The notes: generated from the letters alone by a model not told the origin. 64,000 nt of DNA from Macrostomum lignano (GCA_002269645.1 NIVC01000323.1:290092-354091), one strand, 5' to 3'; positions 17,098-62,729 are shown, counted from the first letter of the stretch. Made by a program: numbers and translations.

Positions 17098-17832
17098 TGT
17101 TTAACATGGCTCGTTTGCCCGTGTTTACGGGAGGAATCACTTCGGGGCCGTTGCCTTCTCTAAGGTAATAGGTGACTCTTGTTTCTAAAAATAGATACTG
17201 AGTCATGCGGCCCTCTGCACTTTACCCGCAGACCCTGCCTTCTCTAAGGCGGAGGGTGACGTCAGTTCTAAAAATAGAACAGAGTCACGAGGTCTGGCAC
17301 ACACTGGCGCAGCGGGGATTTCCTACCTATAAATTCGTGCCCCTCACCCTTGGTTCAGTCAAAGATTCGGAGTCTTCTTGATCTTCTTTAGTCTAGTTTT
17401 CCAGACTTAGTTCAGTTTCCCATTTAGCTATCTGTAATTGGCCTGACTAAACTTAGACGCCCAAGCCTAAAGGAGGCTAGCACTGTCTTCCCAACCACCC
17501 CCTGAGCCCGGTGGGATCTGCTGACCACCAGGACGCCTTGTTCATTAATCTGCAAATCTGCACGCTGTGCTGAGTTCGTTGACTTATTTATTTCGTTTCG
17601 ACGGGAAGCTCACCTCATCAAAGGCCGAGACCTAAAAAACTGGTGGCAGCACTACCTACGCTACTAAGAGCTAATAGAAGGCTTTCGGTTAAAGCCGGTT
17701 AGCCCAAATCACTGTGCTAGACAGCAGGAGAAGCACAGGTACAACATTGGAGGCAGCGGTGGGATTTGAAGACCTACTAGACCACCCCAGGAAAACCAAA
17801 AGTACTTCAAGAGCAACGAAGTCTTCAGATCA
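17098..17832 (+). mobile_element. LTR (~17098-17746) plus tRNA-Leu primer-binding site and a short internal stub
   Basis: TG...CA ends; duplicated U3-like blocks; TGAGTCA at 17199, TGACGTCA at 17257, TATAAA at 17328; TGGAGGCAGCGGTGGGATT at 17748-17766 matches the tRNA-Leu PBS with one mismatch. The left boundary is approximate. Confidence 0.7.
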
Positions 17833-19371
17833 CTGCAGTCTCATCCGACTGAGCTTGGCGTGAGTCCAGCTGTCTCTCTGCTCCGCTGCTGTTTCCATGG
17901 CAACCAGGCGCCCCAAGTCCGAGCCGTCTCGCCGCAGCCTCGCCCTCGCCCACAGCCTCCGCTCCTCATCTTCCCTGCTGCGGTGAGCGGAGCTGTCACT
18001 GCCGCTGCGGTTCAAAACTCGCCACCGCTTCTGCCTGACCCAGCCGATCTTCTCCTCGTCCTGCGTCTCCATGGCGACGCGTCTCTCTTTCTCGATCATC
18101 TCCATCTGCCGCAGGCTGAGATCCACGTGCTCGCGGCAGTCGCTGTAGTGAGCCAGAGTGAGCAGCTCCTCCAAGTCCGGGTCTCCAAGCAGCTGTTCAA
18201 TCCAATGATCTAATTCGATTGCAGGTGCGCGATTGCGGAGCAGCTCAGCTTGGAGACTCCAGCTCAGGCAGCGGAAGTTCACGTACAGGTGGGAGGAGAG
18301 AGGCTGCGACAGTCTGGCTGTGAACAGAGTCTTCATGAACTCGGGAAGGAATGGAAAGCGAGGCGGAGAGTCGCAGGGGAGGCAGAACCTCCACGCCCAG
18401 TCTGAGTCTGTTTGCAATTTTATCAATATACTCCAGTTTCTACTCTCGTCTCGAATATCCTGTGGCTTCAACCCTGACTCAACCTGATGTCTCTGCAGCT
18501 CCATCGCGAGTCTCTCAGCCTCCTCAGATTCTCCGAACTTCAAATGCGCCATGGCGGTCATGCACAGGGCGGCGCACTTGCACCACTGCAGCTCATGCAG
18601 GAGACTGAGCTGCCTCATCACGGTGTCTCTGTCGCTCGATTCCGACTGCAGCTCGCTCACACACTGGTGCACCACACTGTACACGTCTGCGAACTTGTAG
18701 TAAAACTCTGAAGCATAACTTCCTTTCCTGATCTCCGTGACAGCAAGCGGGGCTGTCAGAGGCAGCAGAGTGAACGGGTGAAAGTAGAACTTCTCTGGCT
18801 GCAGAGGTCTCACGAGTCTCCTCAGCTGCTCGACCACTCCGCTGATGTCGCTTCTCAGCTCACAAAGTCGGTCTCGAACCCTCGCCTTCGTGTTTTCGAA
18901 GTCGCCGCCAATTCCAGCGTTCTTGAAGTAGAGCGGAGCGTCGGGCATGAAGAAGTGCGGCATGCACTCATCGGGCGAGCTGCTCGAGTCGATGAAGCTC
19001 AGCATCAAGTCGAGAGACTCCTTGAGCAGAGCGATCAGATTGTGGGGCTGCCAAGCCTCACTTGAAGGATCTGTTCCATGCTTCTCCAGCATTGTGAAGA
19101 GCAGAGTCTTTGCATGGTAGGTCTTGAGTCCAGGTGTGTCCAGAGTGAGCGGCAAGTGTCTCTTGAAGATGAACTTGGTGAGTGTGAACAGCTGGCCCTG
19201 GACTGTGCTCAGCCGTCTCATGATGTCTTTCTCTTGGAAGCTGAAGCTCACTCTGAGCTCGTTGGTCGAGCTCGGTCTGGTCGCCCGTACGAGGTGAACT
19301 TTGCCATAATGCTTAATTTTATAATTAATGTCGTCATCATCATCATCATCATCATCACCATCATAATCATT

Positions 19372-19407
<36 letters not shown>

Positions 19408-20582
19408 GTCATCAGTGTCACCATCAAAAATACTGAATGGAATCAGTTTTCTCATTCTGGCCTTGCAGAAACTTCTGCAGCACTGGATCGCATGGCATGT
19501 GTCCTGTGCAGGCCGCACACCGCATGCCGTGGCTGTCACTGCAGGTTGGCTGCCTGCAGAGCGTAGTTAGCGGAGAGTGGCTTTATGGCGAGTGAAAAAT
19601 ATAAGTTTGTTTGAAACTGCTTGAATGTGCTGGTTGAGTTCGTTCTGCTCATGTGTCAGTGCTACTACTGTAATCAATGAATGAAGCAAAGTATTCGTTA
19701 AAGTGCTTGCAGGGGCACCGCTATGGGGTTGATGATGGGGAGAGAAAGCGAAAAGTTATTAAACTTCCTTTCAGATCAGATTTTAACGTACTGCGCATAG
19801 TAAGCATTGTAATTATAACATCTGAGGTGCTGAGGCAGTACATTGGATAAATAATCAGCGGTCTCCGTCCGTGACAACGATTGTCTGGCGTATATTACCT
19901 CGTGCTCATTATCTTAAAGAGTCACGAAATACAATGAAAAGAACACTAAGTGTCTGTTGAGATGAGCTGTTGAGAAGGCTGAAAAGGAACTGAAGGACTG
20001 GAAGTCAATTCCAAAGACAATCAAACAAGTTGCCTGATTGGTTGCCAGAATTTTTTTCAAAGTGGAATGAGAGCTGGATGTTTTTCAGAATGGTTTTAAA
20101 TTCAGGTTGAACTTGTGAACTCAAAAATTCAGAAACTTCGTATTGAATAAAAAATCGATTGAGCAATTCATGGATTGGCATAGGGAGCCGAGCGTCACTC
20201 ACCTGCTCCGACTGGCACCTGTGCGTGGCCCTCCTTGACCTGCAGCGGAGTGGCGTCTTTGCAGGAATCCCGGAAGCTTTCTTGTCCATCGCAGCCGCCT
20301 TCTAGATGGAACTTTTGCCCAGCAACCAGCACAGTCCAGTCAATGTCCGAGTCTGCAGCTGTCCTGCCGTTTACTTGCACCAGACTGTTGGCCCAGCCCT
20401 CTGCGTAGCTGCCCGTCATCTGCCTGCAATTGCCATCCTGTGCGACGTCTTTTGCTACTTGTTGCAGCCAGTCAGCCAGTCTCTGCTGACGCTTTGCTCT
20501 CTGCTCGGTGAATCCCGCCTCGCTGAGCAGTCGATGCAGCTCCTCGCTGAGACGGCGGTCTTGCTCGGAGTGGTCTGAGAGT
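17830..20582 (-). CDS. Copy 1 NTase/Mab-21 half
   Basis: GSYAEG...DSDID, QDTCHAI, HLV, LRVSFSFQEK, LKTYHAKTLLF and PHFFMP motifs of the Mab-21 family. Confidence 0.88.
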
Positions 20583-22055
20583 CTGGGTGGAGAGGTGAGA
20601 AAGGAGTCAGTGGAGGTGGATTTGCAGCGTGGCCCAAGCTCAACCCAAGGGAGGAAGACAGTCAGACTCACGGATGGAGGCGTTGAGCGACTGTCTGCGG
20701 GTGCTTTGGGTTTCTGGAATGTGTGAAGGAAAGCGAGGTAAGGTAGCGAAGTGATTGCGAGTAGAATGGCAACTAATGCAAACTGACTTGGTGGGATTCA
20801 GCAGCCGCAGCACCTGCCGCTGCTCAAATCGCTGTGCGAGCTGCTCACACATGAGGCCCTGACTGTCTCGATGGCTGGAATCGGCTCCATTGTCGATGAG
20901 AGTCTTGGCTGCTCGCACGTGACCGGCTTGGCAGGCTCGTGACAGAGCAGTGCGACCGTGAGTGTCTTGAGCGTGCAGTGAGGCGCCGAGTTGGATGAGT
21001 TGGTGAATGAGCTCGTGATGACCTGCATCAGCTGCGAGCATGAGAGCGGTGGCTCCGGTGTTGTCGTCTGGAAGATCGACATGCTGTGTGCTGAATCGCT
21101 CATAATTGAGCAGTGTGGAAGCAAGAGCGACGTGTCTTTGAGAGATGGAGAGACGGAGCAGGCATGTTATTTGATCTGGTTGCATTCGAGAGAGGGTGTC
21201 GTTGAGCACAAAGTTCCTGCCTTCAATGGCCTTTGCTGCAGTGAAGCTGAGGATGGAGCTGTATTTGAAAAGCCATTCCGGTTCGAGTACGAGGGAGGCA
21301 ACGACATTTTCGCGAAGACGAGAGCAAGCCGGGACTGCGCATTGGAAACGGAGATTCGCTCTCTGATCCGGACTCGAGAGACACGCAATGAGAAAATCGA
21401 CGATTTCAAAGTGACCCTCTTTTGCAGCGTTTTTGGCAGCATTGATGCAGCAGGTGTCCCTGTTTGGTTGGTCATTGATTTGCATGACGAGAAACTTGAC
21501 GATTTCAAAGTGACCCCGGTCTGCAGCAATACCGGCAGCTTTGGTGCAGTAGGTCTCCCTGATTGGTTGGTCATTGATTTGTGGAACTAAAAACTTGATG
21601 ATTTCATAGTGACCAGGAAGTACAGCCCATTCGGCAGCGTTTTTGCAGCAGGCGTCCCTTTTTAATCGGTCATTGATTCGTGAGACGAGAAACTTGACGA
21701 TTTCAAAGTGACCCCGGTCTGCAGCATTTACGGCAGCTTCGATGCAGCAGGTGTCCCTGTTTGATTGGTCATTGAATTGTGGAACTAGAAACTTGATGAT
21801 TTCAAAGTGACCATAAAGTAGAGCGCTTTCGGCAGCTTTATTACAGCAGGTGTCCCTGTTTGATCGGTCATTGATTTGTGAGACGAGAAACTTGACGTCT
21901 TCAACATGACCAATTCTTGTAGCAGTGCAAGTAGCCTCGACGATGTCGTTAAAGTTCCCGTGGGTTGCAGCGCGTCGAGCAGTTTGCGTGATGTTGTCGG
22001 TGGTGACGGACTGATGGCGACTTTGGTTTTGGTTCATTGTTCTGGAGAGCGGCAT
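17830..22055 (-). CDS. ANK-cGLR copy 1: ankyrin repeats plus cGAS-like/Mab-21 nucleotidyltransferase (~1137 aa, in frame)
   Basis: Exons 22055-20788, 20713-20672, 20582-20203 and 19553-17830 with GT-AG introns in phases 2, 2, 1; total 3414 nt. The start could instead be ATG 22037. Confidence 0.8.
20788..22055 (-). CDS. Copy 1 ankyrin exon: 5 atypical 33-aa repeats plus canonical ANK repeats
   Basis: GHFEIVKFLV...RDTCC repeats; GATALMLAADAGH and GRTALSRACQAGH. Confidence 0.9.
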
Positions 22056-23367: not shown

Positions 23368-23740
23368 TTGGAATCTGAGCACGAGTTTCACTGGAATCTG
23401 AGCACGAGTTTCATTGGAAACTGAGCACGAGTTTCATTGGAAACTGAGCACGAGTTTCATTGGAAACTGAGCACGAGTTTCATTGGAAACTGAGCACGAG
23501 TTTCACTGGAATCTGAGCACGAGTTTCATTGGAAACTGAGCACGAGTTTCACTCTGGAATCTGAGCACGAGTTTCACTCTGGAATCTGAGCACGAGTTTC
23601 ACTCTGGAATCTGAGCACGAGTTTCATTGGAAACTGAGCACGAGTTTCACTGGAATCTGAGCACGAGTTTCACTGGAATCTGAGCACGAGTTTCACTGGA
23701 ATCTGAGCACGAGTTTCACTGGAATCTGAGCACGAGTTTC
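23368..23740. repeat. 23-bp satellite B (TGGAATCTGAGCACGAGTTTCAC)n, spacer 1
   Basis: Directly visible, ~16 copies. Confidence 0.95.
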
Positions 23741-24081: not shown

Positions 24082-24275
24082 ATGGCGCCCTTTTCCTGCT
24101 GCCCCTGCATTGCGGCCTGGCATTGGCGCCCTTTTCCTGCTGCCCCTGCATTGCGGCCTGGCATTGGCGCTCTTTTCCTGCTGCCCCTGCATTGCGGCCT
24201 GGCATTGGCGCCCTTTTCCTGCTGCCCCTGCATTGCGGCCTGGCATTGGCGCTCTTTTCCTGCTGCCCCTTCATT
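24082..24275. repeat. 41-bp GC-rich satellite C, spacer 1
   Basis: GGCGCCCTTTTCCTGCTGCCCCTGCATTGCGGCCTGGCATT, ~5 copies. Confidence 0.95.
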
Positions 24276-25019
24276 GCGTCATGGCGTCAGTGATGGTGAA
24301 GACACAGTGCGTGGAAAAACGTGATTGACTTCGGCAGTGAGGCCAGCACTATGTCACAAAAGCATGTAGGATGTAGTTTGATATTTTGATTATTTACTGG
24401 GATTTTACGGTAATTCGCATTCAGTTTTCTTAGAGTTCCTCACATCTCACAACACTTTCTGCATCCATATGCGCTATCCATTGAACACTAAACCCGCAAG
24501 CACAGGAGAATCCTTCAAGGAATACTAAGTGCTCGTAGTTATTTGAATCGAATCCTTATGGTGCGTTTGCTGCACCAAAGTGCTTTGATGCCTCAAGGCA
24601 AATTTATCTGTAAAAAGAATGCCGATGTGAATGACATTCTAGATTTAAAAAGATGCTGCAGAGCCGAGCGGCCACCCACAGCCGGAAGTTCAGGAGGTGC
24701 CGCTGCTGGCGCTGCAGGCAGCCACCGGCGATTCTGCAAATCTGCAACTGAAAATTCGTCAAATCTCTCAGCACCCCGCACTTTGAAGGCAGCATTGTGG
24801 GGCAGAGAACACCAAAGGTGAGTTTAAGAACTCATGCACAAACTCTTCCATTATTTTTAAATCTATTTGTGAGCTGTAAAAAGCAAGCAAACATACTACA
24901 AGCGCATTTGAGCAAAGCAACTTCAGCTACTGAAGTACAGATTGGGGAATTTTTTTATTTTTATAGTTTTCTGATCAATACGAAACAGCAGTAAATAAAA
25001 TAAGCGAATTTTAGTTACT

Positions 25020-25413
25020 GTTCATGACGGAGCTGTCAGGCTGTCAGTCACTGAATGTTCATGAGGGAGCTGTCAGGCTGTCAGTCACTGAATGTTCATG
25101 AGGGAGCTGTCAGTCACTGAATGCTCATGAGGGAGCTGTCAGGCTGTCAGTCACTGAATGTTCATGAGGGAGCTGTCAGTCACTGAATGTTCATGAGGGA
25201 GCTGTCAGGCTGTCAGTCAGTGAATGTTCATGAGGGAGCTGTCAGGCTGTCAGTCAGTGAATGTTCATGAGGGAGCTGTCAGTCACTGAATGCTCATGAG
25301 GGAGCTGTCAGGCTGTCAGTCACTGAATGTTCATGAGGGAGCTGTCAGTCACTGAATGTTCATGAGGGAGCTGTCAGGCTGTCAGTCCCTGAATGTTCAT
25401 GAGGGAGCTGTCA
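25020..25413. repeat. 37/29-bp satellite D (GTCAGTCACTGAATGTTCATGAGGGAGCTGTCAGGCT), spacer 1
   Basis: Directly visible. Confidence 0.95.
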
Positions 25414-26032
25414 GATACATGAGTACATGATGAAAGAACATGAAATCGGTTTGCAGACCGATTGAGGTGATTCTGCAATAAACCAGGAGCATGTGCACAT
25501 AATAATTTCAGCATAAAATACAATTATTTAGGAGAAATATGCAGCAAAATTTCTCAAAAAGCTCGCGCAAAAGCCAGAAAAGCTTACAAAATTTCGAGTT
25601 GAACTCAAGCTGCTGCATCAAGTCTCTCCAGCTTCTCCCTGACCCAGCCGACTTTTGAATTTTCAAGGTTCATGTAGATAACTGTTACCTGTGCATTTGG
25701 CTTGAATGTTGTCATTAAAAAGCATTTACAACCGGGTATTGAAGTCCGCAGAGCAAAGAAGACACGCAGTTTGGACGGGAGAAAGCTATTTAGCATGCAG
25801 TGTGAAATGAATTGAAGCACAAATGTACAAAACTGCAGTTCATAGCAGGAGGCCTACTCGATCTCAATGGCTCTCGATGTGCTCATTTCCTCGCAACTGA
25901 GTCACCAACAAGGGAAGAACTAGGGAAAATATTCAATTTACAAAAAACCCATGGATCAACTGAATTTAGCCGAACAAAATCAGGGACTAAGAAGCAGATT
26001 AGGGAGACCGAACATTTAAATCAAGCAATATC

Positions 26033-28107
26033 TTAATAATGCGACTCGAATTTGAGGACTCCGGCTGCTGCATCAAGTCTCTTTAGCTTCTGCCTGACCC
26101 AGCCGATCTTCTCCTCGTCCTGCGTCTCCATGGCGACGCGTCTCTCTTCCTCGATCATCTCCATCTGCTGCAGGCTGAGCTCCACGTGCTCGCGGCAGTC
26201 GCTGTAGTGAGCCAGAGTGAGCAGCTCCTCCAAGTCCGGGTCTCCAAGCAGCTGTTCAATCCAATGATCGAATGCGATTGCAGGTGCGCGATTGCGGAGC
26301 AGCTCAGCTTGGAGACTCCAGCTCAGGCAGCGGAAGTTCACGTACAGGTGGGAGGAGAGAGGCTGCGACAGTCTGGCTGTGAACAGAGTCTGCGTGAACT
26401 CGGGAAGGAATGGGAAGCGAGGCGGAGAGTCGCAGGGGAGGCAGAACCTCCACGCCCAGTCTGAGTCTTCTGGCAATTCAGTTTCTCTGATGAATTCTAT
26501 CCCTTCAATATCCTGTGGCATCAACCCTAACTGAACCTGATGTCTCTGCAGCTCCATCGCAAGTCTCTCCGAATCTTCGGATTCTCCGAACTTCAAATGC
26601 GCCATAGCGGTCATGCACAGGGCGGCGCACTTGCACCACTGCAGCTCATGCAGGAGACTGAGCTGCCTCATCAGGGTGTCTCTGTCGCTCGATTCCGACT
26701 GCAGCTCGCTCACACACTGGTGCACCACACTGTACACGTCTGCGAACTTATTGTAAAACCCTGACCACTTAGTTCCTTTCCTGATCTCCGTGACAGCAGG
26801 CGGCGCTGTCAGAGGCAGCAGAGTGAACGGGTGAAAGTAGAACTTCTCTGACTGCAGAGGTCTCACGAGTCTCATCAGCTGCTCGACCACTCCGCCGATG
26901 TCGCTTCTCAGCTCACAAAGTCGGTCTCGAACCCTCGCCTTCGTGTTGTCGAAGTCGCCGCCGATTCCAGCGTTCTTGAAGTAGAGCGGAGCGTCGGGCA
27001 TGAAGAAGTGCGGCATGCACTCATTGGGAGAGCTGCTGCTCGAGTCGATGAAGCTCAGCATCAAGTCGAGAGACTCGTTGAGCAGAGCGATCAGATTGTG
27101 GGGCTTCCAAGCCTCACTTGAAGGATCTGTGCCATGCTTCTCCAGCATTGTGAAGAGCAGAGTCTTTGCATGGTAGGTCTTGAGTCCAGGTGTGTCCAGA
27201 GTGAGCGGCAAGTGTCTTTTGAAGATGAACTTGATGAGTGTGAACAGCTGGCCCTGGACTGTGCTCATGTTTCTCATGATATCTTTCTCATGGAAGCTGA
27301 AGCTCACTCTGAGCTCATTGGTCGAGCTCGGTCTGGTCGCCCGAACAAGGTGTACATTATCATTAATACTCGTATAAGGAAGCAGTTTTTAATTCCATCT
27401 TCACAGAAACTGCTGCAGCACCAGATCGCATGGCACGTGTCCTGTGCAGGCCGCACACCGCACGCCGTCGCTGCCACTGCAGGTTGGCTGCCTGAAATGC
27501 GCAGAGAGCGGAGAGTCGCTTTATGGAGAGTGAAAAAGATGGGTTGGTTTGAAACTGCAAATTTTCTCTTGATTAGTTCAGTTTAAGTTTCTAATGAAAT
27601 ATCCTTTAAAAAAGAAAGTTTTTTTCACTTATTTGTTTAGCGGATCTGCATTCGCATTCAAAGAAGTTGCTGGAGGCTGATTGCATGCAGATTTCAGCAT
27701 TCTGATGATGAACCCAGCCTCACTCACCTGCGCCTACCGCCACCTGTACGTGGCCCTCCTTGTTCTGAAGCCGAGTGGCTGTTTTGCAGGAATCCAGCCA
27801 AATTCTTTGTTTACCGGTATTGCAGCCACCTTCCAGATGGAACTGATGCCCAGCAACCAGCACAGTCCAGTCAATGTCCAAGTCTGCAGCTGTCCTGCCG
27901 TTCACTTGCACCAGACTGTTGGCCCAGCCCTCTGCGTAGCTTCCCGTCATCTGCCTGCCATCCTGTGTGAGGACACGAGCGACTCCTTCCAGCCAGTCAG
28001 CCAGTCTCTGCTGACACTTTGCTCTCTGCTCGGTGAATCCAGCATCGCTGAGCAGTCGATGCAGCTCCTCGCTCAGACGTCTGTCTTGCTGGGAGTCGTC
28101 TGAGAGC
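26033..28107 (-). CDS. Copy 2 NTase/Mab-21 half (frameshifted)
   Basis: GSYAEG...DLDID; SFSFHEK, LKTYHAKTLLF and PHFFMP. Confidence 0.8.
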
Positions 28108-28162
28108 CTGGAATGATCCGAGATGCGTGTGGGTGACTTGCTCAAAGTTGGATGGACAGAAC

Positions 28163-28551
28163 AAGCAGGAGAGCTGAGAGTGCAGCTGCTGCAGCACTCA
28201 GACTGGCATCTCAAGCAGGAGAGCTGAGAGTGCAGCTGCTGCAGCACTCAGACTGGCATCTCAAGCAGGAGAGCTGAGAGTGCAGCTGCTGCAGCACTCA
28301 GACTGGCATCTCAAGCAGGAGAGCTGAGAGTGCAGCTGCTGCAGCACTCAGACTGGCATCTCAAGCAGGAGAGCTGAGAGTGCAGCTGCTGCAGCACTCA
28401 GACTGGCATCTCAAGCAGGAGAGCTGAGAGTGCAGCTGCTGCAGCACTCAGACTGGCATCTCAAGCAGGAGAGCTGAGAGTGCAGCTGCTGCAGCACTCA
28501 GACTGGCATCTCAAGCAGGAGAGCTGAGAGTGCAGCTGCTGCAGCACTCAG
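28163..28551. repeat. 50-bp intronic satellite E, copy 2 (~8 units)
   Basis: CAAGCAGGAGAGCTGAGAGTGCAGCTGCTGCAGCACTCAGACTGGCATCT repeated; internally palindromic. Confidence 0.95.
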
Positions 28552-29066
28552 TCCAACCCAATCTCAACCCTGCTGAGTTTCGCTGCAATTTCTGCCCCAA
28601 GCTGCCAGCCTGTTAGAAGGCGCAATGCGGCAGTGAAAGCCGAACCGATCAGACTCACCGATGGAGGCCCGAATCCAAGAGGTGAGCGGCTGCCTGTCGG
28701 GCCTCTGGGCTTCTGCAATGCAGGAAGGAAAGGAAGTTCTTACAGCATTTGAGTCTAAGATTTTCAAAGTCAAAAAGAGAAAGCAGAGGCAGGCGGAAGC
28801 AGAATACCGAGAGAAAGCAGACAATTAGCAAGAGATAGTCGAGTCAATACCGGGAATACCACCATTTCAAAGAGAAGTTGCTTGCTGGACGGGAGATTTG
28901 TGAGTTGAAAATATTGAAGCGGCTGCGGTCTGCAGTGAGCTGCACCTGAGCAAACCGCTGCCCAGATAGGGGCTGCTCACGAAATCATGATATCACGAAA
29001 ACAGCGAGTGACCATCCTATAATGGGACTCCTATTATTCGAAAAACCGGTTTTTGAACTTCTGTTT

Positions 29067-30694: not shown

Positions 30695-32160
30695 CCCGCT
30701 CCACTGGGATCCAGCAGCCGCAGCACCTGCCGCTGCTCAAACCGCTGTGCCACCTGTGCACACGTCAGACCCCGACCGTCTCGATGACTCGCATCCGCTC
30801 CTCTGTCCATCAGAACCTTGGCTGCTCGCGCGTGACCGGCTTCGCACGCTCGTGACAGAGCAGTCCGACCCTGACTGTCTTCAGCACGCACTGACGCACC
30901 GAGATCGATGAGTTTCTCAATGAGTTCGTGATGACCTGCATCAGCTGCCAGCATGAGAGCAGTGGCTCCAGTGCTGTCTTCTGGCAGATCGACATGCTCT
31001 GTGCTCACTCGCTCATCATTGATCAGTGTGACAGCAAGAGCGACGTGTCTTTGAGAGATGGAGAGACAAAGCAGCTCTGTGATGCGAGCTGGCTGCATTC
31101 GAGAGAGGGTGTCGTTGAGAACAGAGTTTATGCCTTCGATGGCCATTGCTGCAGTGAAGCTGAGGATGGTGCTGGATTGGAAGAGCCAGTCGGGCTCGAG
31201 GCCGAGGGAGGCAACGACATCTTCGAAAAGACGAGAGCAAGCCGCGACTGCGCATTGGAAACGAAGATTCGCTCTTTGATCCGGACTTGAGAGACACGAG
31301 ATGAGGAACTTGACGACTTTTTCTTGATTCGATTCTGCAGCAGATTTGGCAGAGTCAATGCAGAACTGATCTCTTTTTGTTGGGTCAGCGACTGTCTGCA
31401 CCAGAAACTTCACCACTTTTAACTGACCCTCGGTTGCAGCAGATTCGGCAGCCTCGATGCAGCACTGATCTCTTTTTGTTTGTTCAGAGACTGTCTGCAG
31501 AAGAAACTTCACCACTTCTAATTGACCATTGATTGCTGCAGATTTTGCTACCTTCCTGCAGAACTGATCTCTTTTTGTTTGTTCAGAGACTGTCTGCACA
31601 AGAAACTTCACCATTTCTAATTGACCATTGATTGCTGCAGATTTTGCTGCCTTCCTGCAGCACTGATCTTTGTTTGTCTGGTCAGCTATTGTCTGCACCA
31701 GAAACTTGACCACTTCTAACTGACCTTTGTATGCGCCTTGTTTTGCTGCCTCAATGCAGCACTGATCTCTGTTTGTTTGGTCAGTGACTTTCTGCACCAG
31801 AAACTTCACCACATCCCACTCACCAGCGAATCCAGCATATTCCGCAGTCCCCATGCAGCACTGATCTCTGTTCATTTGATCAAGGATTGTCTGCACCAGA
31901 AACTTCACCACATCCCACTCACCAGCGGATGCAGCATATTCCGCAGCCCCAATGCAGCACAGATCTCTGTTTGTTCGGTCAGCGACTGTAGGCACGAGAA
32001 ATTTCACCACATCCCACTGTCTTTCTTTAGCTGCAATTGGCACACATTTTTCACAAAAGTTTGTTTTGTCTTTCTCGCTTTTCTGAAGCTGCAAATGATG
32101 CTGCAGTGCTTGGATGTCTCCAGCCTTCACGGCTTCGTAAGCGCTTTCTCTTTGGCTCAT
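30695..32160 (-). CDS. Copy 2 ankyrin exon: 7 atypical repeats plus canonical ANK repeats
   Basis: G.(W/L)(D/E)VVKFLVQT..DQT.RDQCC repeats; in-frame TAA 15 nt upstream of the ATG; GTGAGT donor at 30694. Confidence 0.9.
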
Positions 32161-40558: not shown

Positions 40559-40875
40559 ATGGCGCCCTTTTCCTGCTGCCCCTGCATTGCGGCCTGGCAT
40601 TGGCGCTCTTTTCCTGCTGCCCCTGCATTGCGGCCTGGCATTGGCGCCCTTTTCCTGCTGTCCTGCACTGCGCCTGGCATTGGCGCCCTTTTCCTGCTGC
40701 CCCTGCATTGCGGCCTGGCATTGGCGCCCTTTTCCTGCTGCCCCTGCATTGCGGCCTGGCATTGGCGCCCTTTTCCTGCTGTCCTGCACTGCGCCTGGCA
40801 TTGGCGCCCTTTTCCTGCTGCCCCTGCATTGCGGCCTGGCATTGGCGCTCTTTTCCTGCTGCCCCTGCATTGCGT
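40559..40875. repeat. Satellite C, second block in spacer 2
   Basis: 41-bp units plus shortened variants. Confidence 0.9.
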
Positions 40876-44764: not shown

Positions 44765-44818
44765 CTGGAATGATCCGAGATGCGTGTGGGGGACTTTCTC
44801 AAGTTGGATGGACAGAAC

Positions 44819-50475: not shown

Positions 50476-51686
50476 CACCAGGGCTTTAGCACCAGGGGCT
50501 TTAGCACCAGGGGCTTTAGCACCAGGGACGCCATCACCAGGGGCTTTAGCTCCAGGGGCTTTAGCACCAGGGGCTTTAGCACCAGGGGCTTTAGCACCAG
50601 GGGCGCCAGCACCAGGGGCTTTAGCACCAGGGGCTTTAGCACCAGGGGCTTTAGCACCAGGGGCTTTAGCACCAGGGGCTTTAGCACCAGGGGCTTTAGC
50701 ACCAGGGGCTTTAGCACCAGGGGCTTTAGCACCAGGGGCTTTAGCACCAGGGGCTTTAGCACCAAGGGCTTTAGCACCAGGGGCTTTAGCACCAGGGGCT
50801 TTAGCACCAGGGGCTTTAGCACCAGGGGCTTTAGCACCAGGGGCTTTAGCACCAGGGGCTTTAGCACCAGGGGCTTTAGCACCAGGGGCGCCATCACCAG
50901 GGGCTTTAGCTCCAGGGGCTTTAGCACCAGGGGCGCCATCACCAGGGGCTTTAGCTCCAGGGGCTTTAGCACCAGGGGCTTTAGCACCAGGGGCGCCAGC
51001 ACCAGGGGCTTTAGCACCAGGGGCTTTAGCACCAGGGGCTTTAGTTCCAGGGGCTTTAGCACCAGGGGCTTTAGCACCAGGGGCTTTAGCACCAGGGGCT
51101 TTAGCACCAGGGGCTTTAGCGCCAGGGGCTTTAGCACCAGGGGCTTTAGCACCAGGGGCTTTAGCACCAGGGGCGCCAGCACCAGGGGCGCCAGCACCAG
51201 GGGCTTTAGCACCAGAGGCTTTAGCACCAGGGGCGCCAGCACCAGGTGCTTTAGCACCAGGGGCTTTAGCACCAGGGGCTTTAGCACCAGGGGCGCCAGC
51301 ACCAGGGGCTTTAGCACCAGGGGCGCCAGCACCAGGGGCTTTAGCACCAGGGGCGCCAGCACCAGGGGCTTTAGCACCAGGGGCTTTAGCACCAGGGGCT
51401 TTAGCACCAGGGGCTTTAGCACCAGAGGCTTTAGCACCAGGGGCGCCAGCACCTTAGGGTCTTTAGCACCAGGGGCTTTAGCACCAGGGGCTTTAGCACC
51501 AGAGGCTTTAGCACCAGGGGCGCCAGCACCAGGGGCGCCAGCACCAGGGGCGCCAGCACCAGGGGCTTTAGCACCAGGGGCTTTAGCACCAGGGGCTTTA
51601 GCACCAGGGGCGCCAGCACCAGGGGCTTTAGCACCAGGGGCTTTAGCACCAGGGGCTTTAGCACCAGGGTCTTTAGCACCAGGGGC
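50476..51686. repeat. Satellite A large array (15 bp; left block at 49254-49555)
   Basis: ACCAGGGGCTTTAGC, ~80 copies; source of the LAPGA and LVLKP ORFs. Confidence 0.97.
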
Positions 51687-52438: not shown

Positions 52439-53452
52439 CTGAGCACGAGTTTCACTGGAATCTGAGCACGAGTTTCACTGGAATCTGAGCACGAGTTTCA
52501 CTGGAATCTGAGCACGAGTTTCACTGGAATCTGAGCACGAGTTTCACTGGAATCTGAGCACGAGTTTCACTGGAATCTGAGCACGAGTTTCATTGGAATC
52601 TGAGCACGAGTTTCACTCTGGAATCTGAGCACGAGTTTCATTGGAATCTGAGCACGAGTTTCACTGAAATCTGAGCACGAGTTTCACTGGAATCTGAGCA
52701 CGAGTTTCACTGGAATCTGAGCACGAGTTTCATTGGAATCTGAACACGAGTTTCATTGGAATCTGAGCACGAGTTTCACTGGAATCTGAGCACGTGTTTC
52801 ACTCTGGAATCTGAGCACGAGTTTCACTGGAATCTGAGCACGAGTTTCACTCTGGAATCTGAGCACGAGTTTCATTGGAATCTGAGCACGAGTTTCACTC
52901 TGGAATCTGAGCACGAGTTTCACTGGAATCTGAGCACGAGTTTCACTGGAATCTGAGCACGAGTTTCAGTGGAATCTGAGCACGAGTTTCATTGGAATCT
53001 GAGCACGAGTTTCACTGGAATCTGAGCACGAGTTTCATTGGAATCTGAGCACGAGTTTCATTGGAATCTGAGCACGAGTTTCACTCTGGAATCTGAGCAC
53101 GAGTTTCATTGGAATCTGAGCACGAGTTTCATTGGAATCTGAGCACCAGTTTCACTGGAATCTGAGCACGAGTTTCATTGGAATCTGAGCACGAGTTTCA
53201 TTGGAATCTGAGCACCAGTTTCACTGGAATCTGAGCACGAGTTTCATTGGAATCTGAGCACGAGTTTCACTGGAATCTGAGCACGAGTTTCACTGGAATC
53301 TGAGCACGAGTTTCACTGGAATCTGAGCACGAGTTTCACTGGAATCTGAGCACGAGTTTCATTGGAATCTGAGCACGAGTTTCACTGGAATCTGAGCACG
53401 AGTTTCATTGGAATCTGAGCACGAGTTTCATTGGAATCTGAGCACGAGTTTC
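52439..53452. repeat. Satellite B, spacer 3 (~44 copies)
   Basis: Directly visible. Confidence 0.95.
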
Positions 53453-53767: not shown

Positions 53768-53920
53768 CGGCGCCCTTTTGCTGCTGCCCCTGCACTGCGG
53801 CCTGGCATTGGCGCCCTTTTGCTGCTGCCCCTGCATTGCGGCCTGGCATTGGCGCCCTTTTCCTGCTGCCCCTGCATTGCGGCCTGGCATTGGCGCCCTT
53901 TTCCTGCTGCCCCTGCATTG
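53768..53920. repeat. Satellite C, spacer 3 (~4 copies)
   Basis: Directly visible. Confidence 0.9.
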
Positions 53921-54804
53921 CGTCATGGCGTCAGTGATGGTGAAGGCCAGCACTATGTCACAAAAGCATGTAGGATGTAGTTTGATATTTTGATTATTTA
54001 CTGGGATTTTTCGGTAATTCGCATTCAGTTTTCTTAGAGTTCCTCACACCTCACAACACTTTCTGCATCAATATGCGCTATCCATTGACACACAAAACTC
54101 GCAAGCACAGGAGAATTCTTCAAGGAATACTAAGTGCTCGTAGTTCTTTGAATCGAATCCTTACGGTGCGTTCGCTGCACCAAAGTGCTTTGATGCCTCA
54201 AGGCAAAATTATCTGTAAAAAGAATGCCGATGTAAATGACATTCTAGATGTAAAAAGATGCTGCAGAGCCGAGCGGCCACCCACAGCCGGAAGTTCAGGA
54301 GGTGCCGCTGCTGGCGCTGCAGGCAGCCACCGGCGATTCTGCGGCTGCCTGCTGGCTGAGGAGGTGCCGGCTGACCTTTGATGTTATTGTGACCTTGCAG
54401 CTTTTTATGTACTGTTATGTTTGTCTTCAGGGATTTTACAGTTGATTCACTGTAGGATTCTCATATTATATTGAGGTAATCACTAAGGTATTTTGTTTCG
54501 TGAACTGAAAAATCATAAAATCTCTCACCACGCGGAACTTTGAAGGCAGCATTGTGGGGCAGAAAACACCAAAGGTGAGTTCAAGAACTCATGCACAAAG
54601 TCTTCCATTATTTTCAAATCTTTTTGTGAACTATAAAAAGCAAGCAAACATACTACGAGCGCATTTGAGCAAAGCAACTTCAGCTACTGAAGTACAGATT
54701 GGGGAATTTTTTTATTTTTATAGTTTTCTGATCAATACGAAACAGCAGTAAACTGTAAAAGCAAGCAAATGTATTTTAACAAAGCAACATAAAATATTAT
54801 AAAA

Positions 54805-55214
54805 CAGTCAGTGAATGTTCATGAGGGAGCTGTCAGGCTGTCAGTCACTGAATGTTCATGAGGGAGCTGTCAGGCTGTCACTCACTGAATGTTCATGAGG
54901 GAGCTGTCAGGCTGTCAGTCACTGAATGTTCATGAGGGAGCTGTCAGGCTGTCACTCACTGAATGTTCATGAGGGAGCTGTCAGGCTGTCAGTCAGTGAA
55001 TGTTCATGAGGGAGCTATCAGGCTGTCAGTCAGTGAATGTTCATGAGGGAGCTGTCAGGCTGTCAGTCAGTGAATGTTCATGAGGGAGCTATCAGGCTGT
55101 CAGTCAGTGAATGTTCATGAGGGAGCTGTCAGGCTGTCAGTCACTGAATGTTCATGAGGGAGCTATCAGGCTGTCAGTCAGTGAATGTTCATGAGGGAGC
55201 TGTCAGGCTGTCAG
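54805..55214. repeat. Satellite D, spacer 3
   Basis: Directly visible 37-bp units. Confidence 0.95.
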
Positions 55215-55814: not shown

Positions 55815-58800
55815 TCAGAATAAGCAGTTTGATTCAACAACGTCTCTCCAGCTATCGATGTACTCGTTTTGTAAAAAAATTACTGACAAACAGAAGCAAA
55901 ACCACAGCAAAGCAAAGCAAAATAAAACAAAAGTCTTCCTTGTGCGACCTTGGTTTTGCGATTTGACTTGGAGTAGTTCGGATGCTCCATCAAGTCTCTC
56001 CAGCTTCTCCAGTCTCATCCGACTGAGCTTGGCGTGAGTCCATCTGTTTCTCTGCTCCGCTGCAGTTTCCATGGCAACCAGGCGACCCAAGTCGGCCCCG
56101 TCTCGCCGCAGCCTCGCCCTCGCCCACAGCCTCCGCTCCTCATCTTCCCTGCTGCGGTGAGCACCGCTGTCACTGCCGCTGCGGTTCGAAACTCGCCACC
56201 GCTTCTGCCTGACCCAGCCGATCTTCTCCTCGTCCTGCGTCTCCATGGCGACGCGTCTCTCTTTCTTGATCATCTCCATCTGCTGCAGGCTGAGCTCCAC
56301 GCGCTCGCGGCAGTCGCTGTAGTGAGCCAGAGTGAGCAGCTCCTCCAAGTCCGGGTCTCCAAGCAGCTGTTCAATCCAATGATCGAATGCGATTACAGGT
56401 GCGCGATTGCGGAGCAGCTCAGCTTGGAGACTCCAGCTCAGGCAGCGGAAGTTCACGTACAGGTGGGAGGAGAGAGGCTGCGACAGTCTGGCTGTGAACA
56501 GAGTCTGCGTGAACTCGGGAAGGAATGGGAAGCGAGGCGGAGAGTCGCAGGGGAGGCAGAACCTCCACGCCCAGTCTGAGTCTTCTGGCAGTATTTTATT
56601 GAACACGTACCAGCTCTCGTTGTTTTGAATATCCTGTGGCATCAACCCTGATTCAACCTGATGTCTCTGAAGCTCCATCGCGAGTCTCTCAGCCTTCTCA
56701 GATTCTCCGAACTTCAAATGCGCCATGGCGGTCATGCACAGGGCGGCGCACTTGCACCACTGCAGCTCATGCAGGAGACTGAGCTGCCTCATCAGGGTGT
56801 CTCTGTCGCTCGATTCCGACTGCAGCTCGCTCACACACTGGTGCACCACACTGTACACGTGAGTCCATCTGTGAGTCCATCTGTTTCTCTGCTCCGCTGC
56901 AGTTTCCATGGCAACCAGGTGACCCAAGTCGGTCCCGTCTCGCCTCGCCATCGCCCACAGCCTCCGCTCCTCATCTTCCCTGCTGCGGTGAGCACCGCTG
57001 TCACTGCCGCTGCGGTTCGAAACTCGCCACCGCTTCTGCCTGACCCAGCCGATCTTCTCCTTGTCCTGCGTCTCCATGGCGACGCGTCTCTCTTTCTCGA
57101 TCATCTCCATCTGCTGCAGGCTGAGCTCCACGTGCTCGCGGCAGTCGCTGTAGTGAGCCAGAGTGAGCAGCTCCTCCAAGTCCGGGTCTCCAAGCAGCTG
57201 TTCAATCCAATGATCGAATGCGATTACAGGTGCGCGATTGCGGAGCAGCTCAGCTTGGAGACTCCAGCTCAGGCAGCGGAAGTTCACGTACAGGTGGGAG
57301 GAGAGAGGCTGCGACAGTCTGGCTGTGAACAGAGTCTGCGTGAACTCGGGAAGGAATGGGAAGCGAGGCGGAGAGTCGCAGGGGAGGCAGAACCTCCACG
57401 CCCAGTCTGAGTCTTCTGGCAGTATTTTATTGAACATGTACCAGCTCTCGTTGTTTTGAATATCCTGTGGCATCAACCCTGATTCAACCTGATGTCTCTG
57501 AAGCTCCATCGCGAGTCTCTCAGCCTTCTCAGATTCTCCGAACTTCAAATGCGCCATGGCGGTCATGCACAGGGCGGCGCACTTGCACCACTGCAGCTCA
57601 TGCAGGAGACTGAGCTGCCTCATCAGGGTGTCTCTGTCGCTCGATTCCGACTGCAGCTCGCTCACACACTGGTGCACCAAACTGTACACATCTGCGAACT
57701 TGCAGTACAATTGTTGAGAGCCACTTCCTTTCCTGATCTCCGTGACAGCAGGCGGCGCTGTCAGAGGCAGCAGAGTGAACGGGTGAAAGTAGAACTTCTC
57801 TGACCGCAGAGGTCTCACGAGTCTCCTCAGCTGCTCGACCACTCCGCCGATGTCGCTTATCACCTCACAAAGTCGGTCTCGTACCCTCGCCTTCGTGTTG
57901 TCGAAGTTGCTGCCGATTCCAGCGTTCTTGAAGTAGAGCGGAGCGTCGGGCATGAAGAAGTGCGGCATGCACTCATCGGGAGAGCTACTCGAGTCGATGA
58001 AGCTCAGCATCATGTCGAGAGACTCCTTGAGCAGAGCGATCAGATTGTGGGGCTGCCAAGCCTCATTTTTAGGATGGGTGCCATGCTTCTCCAGCATGAA
58101 GAATAGCAGAGTCTTTGCATGGTAGGTCTTGAGTCCAGGTGTGTCCAGAGTGAGCGGCAAGTGTCTCTTGAAGATGAACTTGATGAGTGTGAACAGCTGG
58201 CCCTGGACTGTGCTCAGGTCTCTCATGATGTCTTTCTCTTGAAAGCTGAAGCTCACTCTGAGCTCGTTGGTCGAGCTCGGTCTGGTCGCCCTAACGAGGT
58301 GAACATCATTCCTGTTTGCAGTCAGTTTTTTAATCCTGTCCTTACAGAATCTGCTGCAGCACAGGATCGCATGGCACGTGTCCTGTGCAGGCCGCACACC
58401 GCACGCCGTGGCTGTCACTGCTGGTTGGCTGCCTGAAGAGCGCAGTGAGAGGAGAGTCGCTTTGTGGCGAGTGAAAAAAAATGGTTGGTTTGAAACTGCA
58501 GATTTTCTTTTGGCTCGTTTGGAGTTTTAAGTATTTCAAAATATCCTTTGAAACGAAGGGTAGAATTTTATTTAATCCTGCAATAAATGTTTTGGCGGAA
58601 ACGCCATTTACACACTCGCCAAATGTACACATGCGCGCTAATGCTATTTATGTTTATTCAGTCCTCCAATTTTATTCAGCAGATTTTTGGCACCCGCCAA
58701 AGCTTTGGCAATTTTTGGCACTCCACAGAATTTACACGCTCTCTGAAGAGCCAAATATATGCATTTGTGAGGCATGAGCCTCTGCACCCACTAAGTTAGC

Positions 58801-59593
58801 CCAGCTTCAGCTTCAGCTGCTCTGGCTTCATCAGGTTGCAGCTCAGCACAGCTGATCAAGCATCATCAGGACTCAGTGCCAGCAGCAAGGCACCAATCAG
58901 GCAGTCAGGGCGGCTTTTCCAATTTTATTTGAATTTTTGAACTGAGAGCAGCGGCACCTACGCAGAGCCGTGCCGCCTACCGTGGGTCACCCAAGCACCG
59001 CTGCACCCACTCTGCTGCAATCGGAGCCTGTGAATTCAAAACCCAATGGCCCGGCTCAGCCAGTCGGCATCAGAGTTTTCTTTTCAATTTCGCCTGCCGC
59101 TTGTTTCAGCACCCAAGCCGACATTCGCAGTCACAGAAGCTGCTGGACTCTTGTTCGCCACTCGGGCGAATTTGAAATTGAGCAAAGTTAACTTGCTCCT
59201 AGTTGCATGCGGATCTCAACATTCTAATGATGAACCCAGCCTCACTCACCTGCTCCCACTGCAACCTGTGCGTGGCCCTCCGTGACCTGCAGCCGAGTGG
59301 CGTCTCTGCATTGCTGCCGATCTCTGTTGCAGCCACCTTCCAGATGGAACTGCTGCCCAGCAACCAGCACAGTCCAGTCAATGTCCGAGTCTGCAGCTGT
59401 CCTGCCGTTCACTTGCACCAGACTGTTGGCCCAGCCCTCTGCGTAGCTGCCCGTCATCTGCCTGCGATCGTCATCCTGTGTGAGGACTCGAGCCACTTCT
59501 TCCAGCCTGTCAGCCAGTCTCTGCTGACACTTTGCTCTCTGGTCAGTGAATCCCGCATCGCTGAGCAGTCGATGCAGCTCCTCGTCTGAGAGT
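55815..59593 (-). CDS. Copy 4 NTase/Mab-21 half
   Basis: GSYAEG...DSDID; QDTCHAI; HLV; SFSFQEK; LKTYHAKTLLFF; PHFFMP. Confidence 0.88.
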
Positions 59594-62500
59594 CTGGAAG
59601 GATGCGAGTGTGTAAAGTATTGAAGGTCAGAGTGCAGGTGCAGTCAGTAGAGACGGATTTTAAAATTGCAGTGGCCAAGCTCATGTAGTGCATGCGCCCT
59701 TGTCAGTTGGCAGGGCGCGTTGCACTTTGGGGCTGGTTGGGGGGTTGGCGGGCGTGGCAGGGTCTGGCCGCCGGCCGTGCTTTGCGCGTGCCCCTCCCCA
59801 GCCGTGCCCCTGCCCCGTGCTCAGGGCTGGTTGGCTGCGGCCGGGTCAGCTTTGGCGCGGGTGCAGCCCCTCCCCCCTTAGGCGGGGTTTTGATTGGCTG
59901 GGCCGGCGTGGTTTGTTTTGGTGAGCTTAGCCGGTGGGGCCATCGGCCCCAGGGTTCGGTTATTATTTAATGCGGCTCTAGGCCTTGCTCACGCCCTTCG
60001 CGCTGTTTCTCTGTTTCTCTGTTTCTCTGTTTGTTCTGTTTGTTTTGCTCGTGCTGTTTCGTGCTTTGGAATTGGTGTGCTCGCAGAGTACAAGTGCGAG
60101 ACTAGACAGTTAAACAGCAACTCTAGCTATTGAATACTCTAGCTAAGAAACACAAGAGCCTTAAGAAGAATCTCGGAGGTTAGAACCTGCACTGTACAAC
60201 GAGCGAATCAATGAACGCAATAGCGATTTGGCCACTGGTAAGCCGCCTGCTGTTTGAGTTCTTTCTTTTCTGGGAGCTTGTTAGGCTGAGTTCTTGCCAG
60301 AGCGTCATAACGCCGGTAGATCATATAGCTTTTGTAGTACTGTACCGTCTACTCTATATAGTGTGTACAACCTACAGTCTCGAGACTAGAAGCACCCGAG
60401 AGTGTCACCACACCTCGAGCCGCAGCGTGAACTCTGAGTGTCACAACACCAGAAGGATCGGACTATTATCGCAGAGCGTCGTTACGCCTGCTCGTATTCA
60501 TAAAAGTACAGACAGAGTGTCACAACGCCTGTTATATAACGTATAATATATATTGTACTCGGGACTGGGCACCCAAACCGACCCGGACACTCAATCCAAG
60601 GAAGGCAGGTGGCAGTAAAAGCGGCCAGACTCACGGATGGAGGCAGTGAGCGTCTGGCTGGGGTTGCTGTGTGTTTCTGGAATGTGTGAAGGAAAGCGAG
60701 GTAAGGTAGCGAAGTGATTGCGAGTAGAATGGCAACTAATGCAAACTGACTTGGTGGGATTCAGCAGCCGCAGCACCTGACTCTGCTCAAATCGCTGTGC
60801 GAGCTGCGCACACGTGAGGCCCTGACTGTCTCGATGGCTGGCATCGGCTCCATTGTCGATGAGAGTCTTCGCTGCTCGCACGTGACCGGCTTGGCAGGCT
60901 CGTGAGAGAGCAGTGCGACCGTGAGTGTCTTGAGCGTGCAGTGAGGCGCCGAGATCGATGAGTTTGTGAATGAGCTCGTGATGACCTGCATCAGCTGCGA
61001 GCATGAGAGCGGTGGCTCCGGTGTTTTTATCTGGGATATCGACATTCTGTGTGCTGAATCGCTCATGATTGAGCAGTGTGGCGGCAAGAGCGACGTGTCT
61101 TTGAGAGATGGAGAGACGAAGCAGGTGTGTGATTTGAGCCGACTTCATTCGAGAGAGGGTTTTGTTGAGAACAGAGTTCCTGCCTTCGATGGCCATTGCT
61201 GCAGTGAAGCTGAGGATGGTGTTGGATTGGAAAAGCCAGTCGGGCTCGAGGCCGCCGAGGAAGGCAATGACACTTTCGCGAAGACGAGAGCAAGCCGCGA
61301 CTGCGCACTGAAAACGGAGATTCGCTTTTAGATCGGGACTTGAGAGACACGCGATGAGGAACTCAGCGATTTCAAATTGACCACAAAATACAGCTTTTTC
61401 AGCGGCTTTGATGCAGCAGGTGTCCCTGTTTGATTGGCACTTGATATGTGAGACAAGAAACTTGACGATTTCAAAGTGACCATTTTCTGCAGCTTTTTCG
61501 GCAGTTTTGATGCAGCAGGTGTCCCTGTTTAACTGGTCACTGATTTGTGGGGCGAGAAACTTGACGATTTCAAAGTAACCCTTGACTGCAGCTTTTTTGG
61601 CAGCATTGATGCAGCAGGTGTCCCTGTTCGATTGGTCATTGATTTGAGGGACGAGAAACTTGACGATTTCAAAGTGACCATTGTCTGCAGCTTTTTCGGC
61701 AGTTTTGATGCAGCAGGTGTCCCTGTTCGATTGGTCATTGATTTGTGAGACGAGAAACTTGATGATATCAAAGTGACTGGAGACGAGAAACTTGACCATT
61801 TTAAAGTAACTGTTGACTGCAGCTTTTTCGGCAGCTTTGATGCAGCAGGTGTCCCTGTTCTTTTGGTCATTGATTTGTGAGACGAGAAACTTGACGATTT
61901 TAAAGTGACTATTGACTGCAGCTTTTTTGGCAGCATTGATGCAGCAGGTGTCCCTGTTTGATTGGTCACTGATTTGTGGAACGAGAAACTCGACGATTTC
62001 AAAGCGACCATTACGTGCAGCAGATTCGGCAGCAATGATGCAGCAGGTGTCCCTGTTTGATTGGTCATTGATTTGTGCGATGAGAAACTTGACGAATTCA
62101 AAGTAACCCTTGACTGCAGCTTTTTCGGCAGCATTGATGCAGCGGGTGTCCCTGTTTGATTTTCCATTGATTTGTGATAGGAGAAACTCGGCGACTTCGA
62201 AGCGGCCAAACAATGCAGCTCTTTTGGCAGCAATGATGCAGCAGGTGTCCCTGTTTGATTGGTCATTGATTTGTGCGATGAGAAACTTGACGAATTCAAA
62301 GTAACCCTTGACTGCAGCTTTTTCGGCAGCATTGATGCAGCGGGTGTCCCTGTTTGATTTTCCATTGATTTGTGATAGGAGAAACTCGGCGACTTCGAAG
62401 CGGCCAAACAATGCAGCTCTTTTGGCAGCTTTGATGCAGCAGGTGTCCCTGTTTGATTGGTCATTGATGTGTGGGACGAGAAACTTGACGATTTCAAAGT

Positions 62501-62729
62501 AACCAAAAAATGCAGCTCTTTTGGCAGCATTGATGCAGCATGTGTCCCTGTTTGATTGGTCATTGATTTGTGGAACGAGTAACTTGACGTCTTCAAAGCG
62601 ACCCTTGCGTACAGCAGTGCAAATGTCCTGATGGATGTCAGATAAGTGCCCTTCGGTTGCAGCACCTCGAGCAGTTGGCGTGATGTTGTCTATGGTGATG
62701 CGCTGATGGCGACTTTGACTTTGACCCAT
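55815..62729 (-). CDS. ANK-cGLR copy 4 (~1660 aa, in frame; 12 N-terminal repeats; duplicated C-terminal module)
   Basis: Exons 62729-60751, 60676-60635, 59593-59250 and 58432-55815 in phases 2, 2, 1; total 4983 nt. Confidence 0.8.
59684..60589. mobile_element. Solo LTR (906 bp) in an intron of copy 4
   Basis: TGT...ACA termini and 4-bp TSD CTCA (59680-59683, 60590-60593); the empty site matches copy 1 (AAGCTCAACCCAAGG). Confidence 0.8.
60751..62729 (-). CDS. Copy 4 ankyrin exon: 12 atypical 33-aa repeats, one partial repeat and canonical ANK repeats
   Basis: FEIVKFLV.QINDQSNRDTCCI.AA..AA..G repeats at 99-bp periodicity. Confidence 0.9.

Follow-up and report, generated by a model that had tools for sequence, protein, structure and literature searches.

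A stretch of 64,000 nucleotides from Macrostomum lignano, hereafter called the window and numbered from its first letter, was analyzed; it forms the end of contig NIVC01000323.1 (positions 290092-354091; assembly GCA_002269645.1, Mlig_3_7). Between 17830 and 62729, the minus strand of the window contains four head-to-tail gene units that are tandem paralogues of a large M. lignano family of cGAS-like receptors (cGLRs) fused to ankyrin (ANK) repeats. Each unit is a single gene composed of an ANK exon, a micro-exon, a nucleotidyltransferase (NTase) exon and a last exon. This gene model and the family assignment are held with near certainty. The best explanation of the array as a whole, considered moderately probable, is that its members are ANK-fused cGLR paralogues acting as gated nucleotidyltransferases.

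Four copies of one spliced gene

Read as open reading frames (ORFs), each unit presents a long ankyrin ORF, then a short ORF with NTase-like motifs and then another long ORF. An earlier note made from the sequence alone had proposed that the ANK and Mab-21 ORFs are parts of one hidden gene present four times. A tblastn search of the window with copy 1 as query returned exactly four head-to-tail copies, in agreement with that count, and no further fragments of the gene in the window. Copies 2 and 3 show 98-99% identity, in introns as well as exons. Only ~1.3 kb separates the start codon of copy 4 from the contig end, and the array may therefore extend past the assembly.

Independent support for splicing was obtained from an annotated gene. 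The model of copy 3, translated to its first stop, yields a protein of 836 aa that is residue-for-residue identical to PAA85498.1 (P0030; BOX15_Mlig009595g1; UniProt A0A267GHG4), and the DNA of the PAA85498.1 gene (locus L002) matches window positions 58870-33536 with 100% identity over 25,335 bases. The GenBank annotation was derived from a genome-guided StringTie/TACO RNA-seq transcriptome (PMC5730564), and the three introns of copy 3 are therefore transcript-derived. The peptide across the junction in copy 1, ...LRLLNPTKNPKHPQTVAQRLHPLSDHSEQD, corresponds to ...LRLLNPTENPQHLQAAAQRLHPRWDHSEQD in the paralogue P0001 (PAA68676.1), with equivalents also in P0003 and P0005, and the gene for P0001, at a separate locus (L001), uses the same donor and acceptor sequences. 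Given the identity of copy 3 with an RNA-seq-guided protein and the junction peptides shared among paralogues, one gene contains both the ANK and the Mab-21 ORFs as exons, as the note had argued. The description of this gene as hidden did not survive, since fusions of ANK and Mab-21_C are already annotated in M. lignano and are listed as ANK-fused cGLRs by Li et al. 2023, and two close paralogues have been purified.

The protein collection has no exact entry for the spliced product of copy 1, 2 or 4, nor for the ANK and last-exon ORFs of copies 1 and 4 in unspliced form. Before GenBank submission, any transcript that overlapped a repeat annotation was dropped (PMC5730564), a filter that may explain the lack of annotation for copies 1, 2 and 4.

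The donors, micro-exons, acceptor and phase-1 intron proposed in the note were each located where it had placed them on the minus strand, which carries all exons described here, and the reading frame is kept at all junctions. Exon 1 spans 20788-22055, 30695-32160, 47408-48870 and 60751-62729 in copies 1-4. In copy 1 it extends from the start codon through ~5 ANK-like repeats to a conserved canonical ANK half, and in copy 3 it forms the start of the annotated gene BOX15_Mlig009595g1. With the bar marking the splice site, the donor of this exon is AA|GTCAGT in copies 1 (20788|20787) and 4 (60751|60750) and GG|GTGAGT in copies 2 (30695|30694) and 3 (47408|47407). The micro-exon that follows measures 42 nt in copies 1 (20672-20713) and 4 (60635-60676) and 54 nt in copies 2 (28659-28712) and 3 (45716-45769), and its 3' end always reads CCTCCATC[C/G]|GTGAGT. 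In copy 1 it runs from phase 2 to phase 2, and its junction peptide is the one that matches P0001.

The NTase exon opens at a conserved acceptor, CCAG|[A/G]CTCTCAGAC, at 20582, 28107, 44764 and 59593 (copies 1-4), possesses no conserved start codon of its own and ends in phase 1 at GCAG|GTGAGT. It encodes the first two catalytic motifs (GS and DSDID in copy 1, GS...DLDID in copy 2) and occupies 20203-20582 in copy 1, 27728-28107 in copy 2, 44385-44764 in copy 3, where the minus-strand reading matches the annotated gene, and 59250-59593 in copy 4, where at 344 nt it is 36 nt shorter than in the other copies and still in frame. The acceptor of the last exon, YYYCAG|GCAGCCAACC, is conserved at 19553, 27491, 44149 and 58432 (copies 1-4). 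The last exon itself spans 17830-19553, 26033-27491, 42694-44149 and 55815-58432, respectively, and in copy 1 encodes the third catalytic Asp (RPAQDT), the Mab-21_C helical lobe, a C-terminal domain, a charged tail and the stop codon. The resulting spliced ORFs are uninterrupted in copies 1 (1137 aa) and 4 (1660 aa). Because the four copies are paralogues, the recurrence of these motifs does not amount to four separate observations. The four-exon model, micro-exon included, could be correctly reconstructed from raw sequence alone.

A 50-nt satellite occupies intron 2 of copies 2 (28162-28551) and 3 (44818-45608), with 7.8 versus 15.8 copies of the repeat, and constitutes the main length difference between these two genes.

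The proposed four-gene array stands in so far as four copies are present, and falls short in that the last exon contains one frameshift in copy 2 and one in copy 3. In copy 2, an A6 run is reduced to A5 (~27391-27395), and in copy 3, GCGACATC becomes GCGCATC near 43562. Both last exons are otherwise free of stops. As a consequence of the 1-nt deletion, the annotated coding sequence of copy 3, PAA85498.1, ends at 43536, and the frame downstream is open to 42694. As the assembly is a Canu PacBio/Illumina/454 hybrid (PMC5730564), each deletion may denote either a very young pseudogene or an indel error.

Fold and catalytic motifs of the core

The enzyme part of the protein has a predicted cGAS/Mab-21 fold, a bilobal arrangement of an NTase core and a helical Mab-21_C lobe. 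The fold was modelled with AF2 on P0006, an annotated paralogue devoid of the ANK part whose sequence is 87% identical to the core of copy 1. The model was obtained with a pLDDT of 82.5 and a pTM of 0.83. When it was compared with the PDB by Foldseek, the top 50 matches were all cGAS, MAB21L1 or MB21D2, with a probability of 1.00, E values of ~1e-7 to 1e-5 and target-normalised TM scores of 0.37-0.56. Most alignments covered ~380 columns, and those to some MAB21L1 chains only ~200. The structural match to cGAS anticipated by the note was thus found, on this paralogue. By sequence, the best PDB match was 'cGAS-like receptor 1' (8gjy, E 0.011). A profile search of the PDB with alignment A2 was swamped by ankyrin proteins and gave no information on the core.

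Of the Pfam domains that had been expected, ANK and Mab-21_C were identified in copies 1 and 4 and Mab-21 (PF03281) was not. The match to Mab-21_C (PF20266) lies just over the cut-off in both copies (24.3 bits against 24.1 in copy 1). The failure of PF03281, the model of the Mab-21 NTase domain, is a limit of model sensitivity and not a defining biological feature, as fold and motifs are present.

A protein search with the last 739 aa of copy 1 as query retrieved 51 paralogues. Three motifs, GSYAEGW, D[S/L]DIDW and RPAQDTC, occur in each of the four window copies and in the majority of these paralogues. In all four copies they conform to the cGLR pattern hG[GS] ... [DE]h[DE]h ... h[DE]h. In the P0006 model, G65 and S66 are positioned at the junction of strand 60-64 and helix 66-69, D87 and D89 at the start of strand 87-93, and D148 on strand 146-155. 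From motif order and secondary structure, we infer that these residues follow one another as expected of cGAS and other Pol-beta-type NTases. With their acidic triad kept, the sequences do not show the active-site loss of non-catalytic proteins of the MAB21L1/2 type.

Ankyrin arrays, C-terminal domain and differences between copies

From the N-terminus, the gene encodes a variable set of ANK repeats (5-12), a canonical ANK block, the micro-exon linker, the NTase core, a domain of ~225 aa and a charged tail. The ANK region was matched by Ank_2 over 6 stretches in copy 1 (E 5e-42) and over 9 in copy 4 (E 2e-49). The variable part is made of 33-aa ANK-like repeats with a conserved RD.CC motif, numbering ~5, 7, 7 and 12 in copies 1-4, and appears in the DNA as 99-nt tandem repeats of 5.3, 6.8, 6.8 and 12 copies.

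The exon described in the note as the Mab-21 exon does encode Mab-21_C, and it also encodes a separate conserved domain that the note did not distinguish. This C-terminal domain of ~225 aa follows the core of ~370 residues (copy 1: 18016-18696, minus strand, 227 aa). Modelled alone with AF2, the copy 1 domain gave a pLDDT of 88.1 and a pTM of 0.87, and in it four TPR-like helices lead into a small sheet and then further helices. Foldseek returned no match to this model in the PDB at E <= 0.001, the best E value being 0.8 and attributable to TPR-like noise. In copy 4, the C-terminal domain and charged tail are duplicated in tandem and in frame, as two units (57689-56028) starting at ~57689 and ~56858.

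A charged segment of ~70 aa in the tail (RWRV...SRMRL) is shared by copies 1 and 4 and missing from copies 2 and 3 (17830-18015 compared with 26033-26100 and 42694-42760). Copies 2 and 3 end instead in KLKRLDAAAGVLKFESHY, which is similar to the very end of P0003. The segment may have been deleted, or it may reflect an internal intron that is optional.

The core of copy 1 alone contains an in-frame poly-Asp run of ~32 residues, derived from (GAT)n at 19330-19425 (minus strand) and located in a core loop. The isoelectric point (pI) of the core is ~5 in copy 1, owing to this insert, 7.3-8.8 in the other copies and 8.3-9.5 in most paralogues. Because the core is basic in most paralogues and acidic in copy 1 through the insert, its pI is no guide to ligand class.

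The ratio of nonsynonymous to synonymous substitution rates (dN/dS) between copies was ~0.5 for most regions and pairs. Between copies 1 and 2, dS was ~1 for the N-terminal repeats and only 0.08-0.28 elsewhere, a contrast compatible with shuffling of the repeats or, alternatively, with gene conversion that has homogenised the 3' half. Positive selection was considered and rejected, as regional dN/dS gave no convincing sign of it. A single value exceeded 1, that of the C-terminal domain between copies 1 and 4; it is based on a dS of 0.035 and more likely reflects gene conversion.

The N-terminus reads MGQ[SN]QS or MGQNLS in copy 4 (MGQSQS, 62729-62709) and in several paralogues (P0001, P0005 and P0010), and copies 1-3 are without Gly2. 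The pattern MGxxx[ST] is a consensus for N-myristoylation. By their sequence, the MGQ N-termini may direct some members of the family to membranes.

Related proteins and known systems

Among the 51 paralogues, 49 are recorded as M. lignano, and most are single proteins in which both ANK and Mab-21_C Pfam domains are found. The wider spread of the family was surveyed by phmmer, with P0006 as query, against 1.84 billion cluster representatives (50% identity clusters). The search returned 180 matches at E <= 1e-3, 98 of them at E <= 1e-10, and in many the alignment, at 30-48% identity, takes in the core as well as the C-terminal domain. Nine named representatives were looked up (to E ~1e-18), and each belongs to M. 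lignano. In the weak tail of the results, the alignment is confined to the Mab-21_C region, and one example from this tail is a generic cGLR as judged by its PF03281 and PF20266 domains. Additional C-terminal domains are annotated in a few paralogues, namely ANK together with a caspase domain (Peptidase_C14) in P0054, P0055 and P0191, and Pkinase in P0013. These could be real sensor-effector fusions or merged neighbouring gene models.

Both the architecture and the family are already catalogued in GenBank, UniProt and the 2023 cGLR catalogue, and copy 3 is already annotated in the form that the note proposed. In a survey of ~3,000 cGLRs, 87% were stand-alone enzymes and some were fused to TPR or ankyrin repeats; PAA68676.1 is listed there with Ank_2 domains (Li et al. 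2023, Table S2; PMC9980059). A literature search on cGAS-like receptors and ankyrin repeats produced only this study as relevant, and none was found that dealt functionally with Macrostomum cGLRs or STING.

The nearest known systems are the catalogued ANK-fused cGLRs of the same species (PAA68676.1 = BOX15_Mlig016402g1, PAA93208.1 and PAA85498.1), which share exon structure and domain order with the window copies. PAA68676.1 is the closest annotated relative of copy 1 (77% identity over the full length, ~85% in the core). Relative to these catalogued proteins, copy 4 is distinguished by its duplicated C-terminal domain and 12 repeats, and copy 1 by its poly-Asp insert.

Vertebrate cGAS (PDB 4k9b, 6ct9) resembles the modelled flatworm protein in its bilobal NTase and Mab-21 helical fold, with cGAS-normalised TM scores of 0.5-0.56 at a probability of 1.00, and in the order of the G-S, [DE]h[DE] and third-acidic motifs. 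It differs in that sequence identity is only 13-17%, in that the flatworm protein is not matched by PF03281, and in that the disordered basic N-terminal tail of cGAS is replaced by an ANK array, with an extra C-terminal domain of ~225 aa. In the coral Stylophora pistillata (Li et al. 2023), cGLR cores occur fused to ankyrin repeats or to a death domain, again within an expanded and highly variable repertoire. The coral, however, belongs to another phylum and has several STINGs and active cGLRs, and a common origin of the fusion is unsupported. MAB21L1/2 (PDB 5eom) has the same fold and appears among the Foldseek matches. Mab21L1/2/3 are described as having no predicted functional active site (PMC9980059), whereas the flatworm copies keep the catalytic motifs.

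Mechanism and alternative explanations

The mechanism proposed by analogy with known cGLRs is that of an enzymatic sensor, for which the prospects are put at even or slightly better. The resting protein would be inactive, as in other cGLRs, and engagement of a ligand or partner would induce synthesis of a nucleotide second messenger. The ANK array, the C-terminal domain or both would provide recognition or autoinhibition. The control of a cyclic-nucleotide synthase by a repeat sensor, put forward in the note, is at this stage a hypothesis. Diversification of the family would proceed by tandem duplication, change in repeat number and exchange of sequence between copies.

Several findings weigh against gated nucleotidyltransferases as an explanation. 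PF03281 gave no match at E <= 0.01 in copies 1 and 4. The modelled fold belongs to P0006, which is not a window protein. An intact reading frame is found in two of the four copies in this assembly (1 and 4). Enzymatic activity is known for no member of the family. A biochemical screen of 140 proteins included five from M. lignano, purified as cores (Table S3), of which two, #92 PAA93208.1 and #93 PAA68676.1, belong to this subfamily and were expressed without the ANK part. The 15 active enzymes came from insects, anemones, molluscs, hydras and corals, and none from a flatworm (PMC9980059). The screened constructs were ANK-less and were offered only dsDNA or poly I:C, and many cGLRs appear inactive in vitro, probably for want of the right ligand (PMC9980059).

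The principal rival is that the cGAS fold has been kept in a non-enzymatic scaffold or adaptor, as proposed for MAB21L1/2, with the ANK repeats, the C-terminal domain or a fused caspase or kinase signalling directly. The absence of reported activity for the M. lignano cores in the 140-protein screen, the unmatched NTase-domain model PF03281 and the paralogues with Peptidase_C14 or Pkinase all favour this explanation. Against it, most of the 51 paralogues, at identities of 30-85%, keep the GS motif, the DxD motif and the third Asp, which would be unexpected if catalysis were dispensable. The lack of a functional active site by which Li et al. define Mab21L1/2/3 does not apply to these copies, and merging of gene models could account for the caspase and kinase fusions. 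A scaffold role is judged unlikely, though it is the most serious of the alternatives.

It is also improbable that the array consists mostly of evolutionary debris. On that view, a recent expansion peculiar to this lineage, within a genome that is itself duplicated and rich in repeats, would be drifting towards pseudogenes, and these four copies would serve no specific function. Such drift would accommodate the frameshifts of copies 2 and 3, the weak constraint indicated by dN/dS of ~0.5-0.8, the satellites that fill spacers and introns, the poly-Asp expansion in copy 1, the internal duplication in copy 4 and the lack of annotation for three of the four copies. It is harder to reconcile with copies 1 and 4, which remain open for 1137 and 1660 aa across three introns, and with the transcript-derived annotation of copy 3. 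Each frameshift is moreover a single-base change with no further stops, of a kind for which indel errors are plausible in a PacBio/Canu assembly, and the exclusion of repeat-overlapping transcripts from the GenBank submission may explain the missing annotations.

It is highly improbable that the ANK ORFs and the Mab-21 ORFs represent adjacent, independent genes: each ANK ORF does continue past the proposed donor to a genomic stop, and the annotated paralogue P0006 has no ANK part, but this rival, which the note had named as its own refuting case in the form of ANK transcripts ending at the genomic stops and Mab-21 exons starting alone, is already contradicted by the identity of the RNA-guided PAA85498.1 with the spliced copy 3, by dozens of annotated paralogues with ANK and Mab-21_C in one protein, and by an NTase exon that opens at a conserved acceptor and has no conserved start codon of its own.

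Other features of the window

Satellites recur beside the gene copies. A 37-nt satellite lies ~0.6 kb downstream of the stops of copies 2, 3 and 4 (25019-25414, 41614-42046 and 54805-55214) and is also present downstream of the paralogue at L001 (36237-37025). A 23-nt satellite lies upstream of copies 1-3 (23369-23740, 34463-35302 and 52439-53452). From this recurrence, the duplication unit seems to include the flanking satellites.

The longest run of a 41-nt satellite, at 35633-38580, contains ~72 copies with 97% matches, a GC content of ~68% and strong AT skew, and all six of its frames are open for ~1000 codons. Shorter arrays of the same satellite are located at 24083-24285, 40560-40881 and 53769-53929. 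A 15-nt satellite of ~80 copies (50476-51686) gives rise to artefactual long ORFs, with PLVLK, GALAP and FSTRG repeats, on both strands.

Outside the array, the plus strand at 6982-7836 contains a reverse-transcriptase fragment whose RVT_1 score of 28.8 bits is just below the cut-off of 29.6 and which is probably a degraded retroelement. Pfam searches of five other window ORFs found nothing except this fragment. A Cys-rich ORF of 312 aa (5523-6461, plus strand) includes FWLGGL...GGWYWV...ERNN, which by eye resembles a C-type lectin domain, and gave no Pfam match at E <= 0.01. Scans of the window for tRNA and Rfam families returned no matches.

Significance

The residual novelty of this locus consists of three unannotated paralogues and an uncharacterised, confidently folded C-terminal domain. 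A more far-reaching interpretation, speculative and doubtful at present, is that the lineage has, in the proteins combining ANK repeats, a cGLR core and the C-terminal domain, a modular receptor repertoire of its own, in which a cGAS-like core would be joined to a private C-terminal domain of new fold and to variable ANK arrays, in some members with caspase or kinase effectors. If true, sensor and effector would be linked by an NLR-like logic, perhaps without recourse to STING, in a phylum from which cGLR signalling is otherwise said to have largely disappeared. M. lignano is tractable by transgenesis and RNA interference, and the family thereby provides a practical entry to the question of why cGLRs persisted and multiplied in this flatworm but were lost from most platyhelminths.

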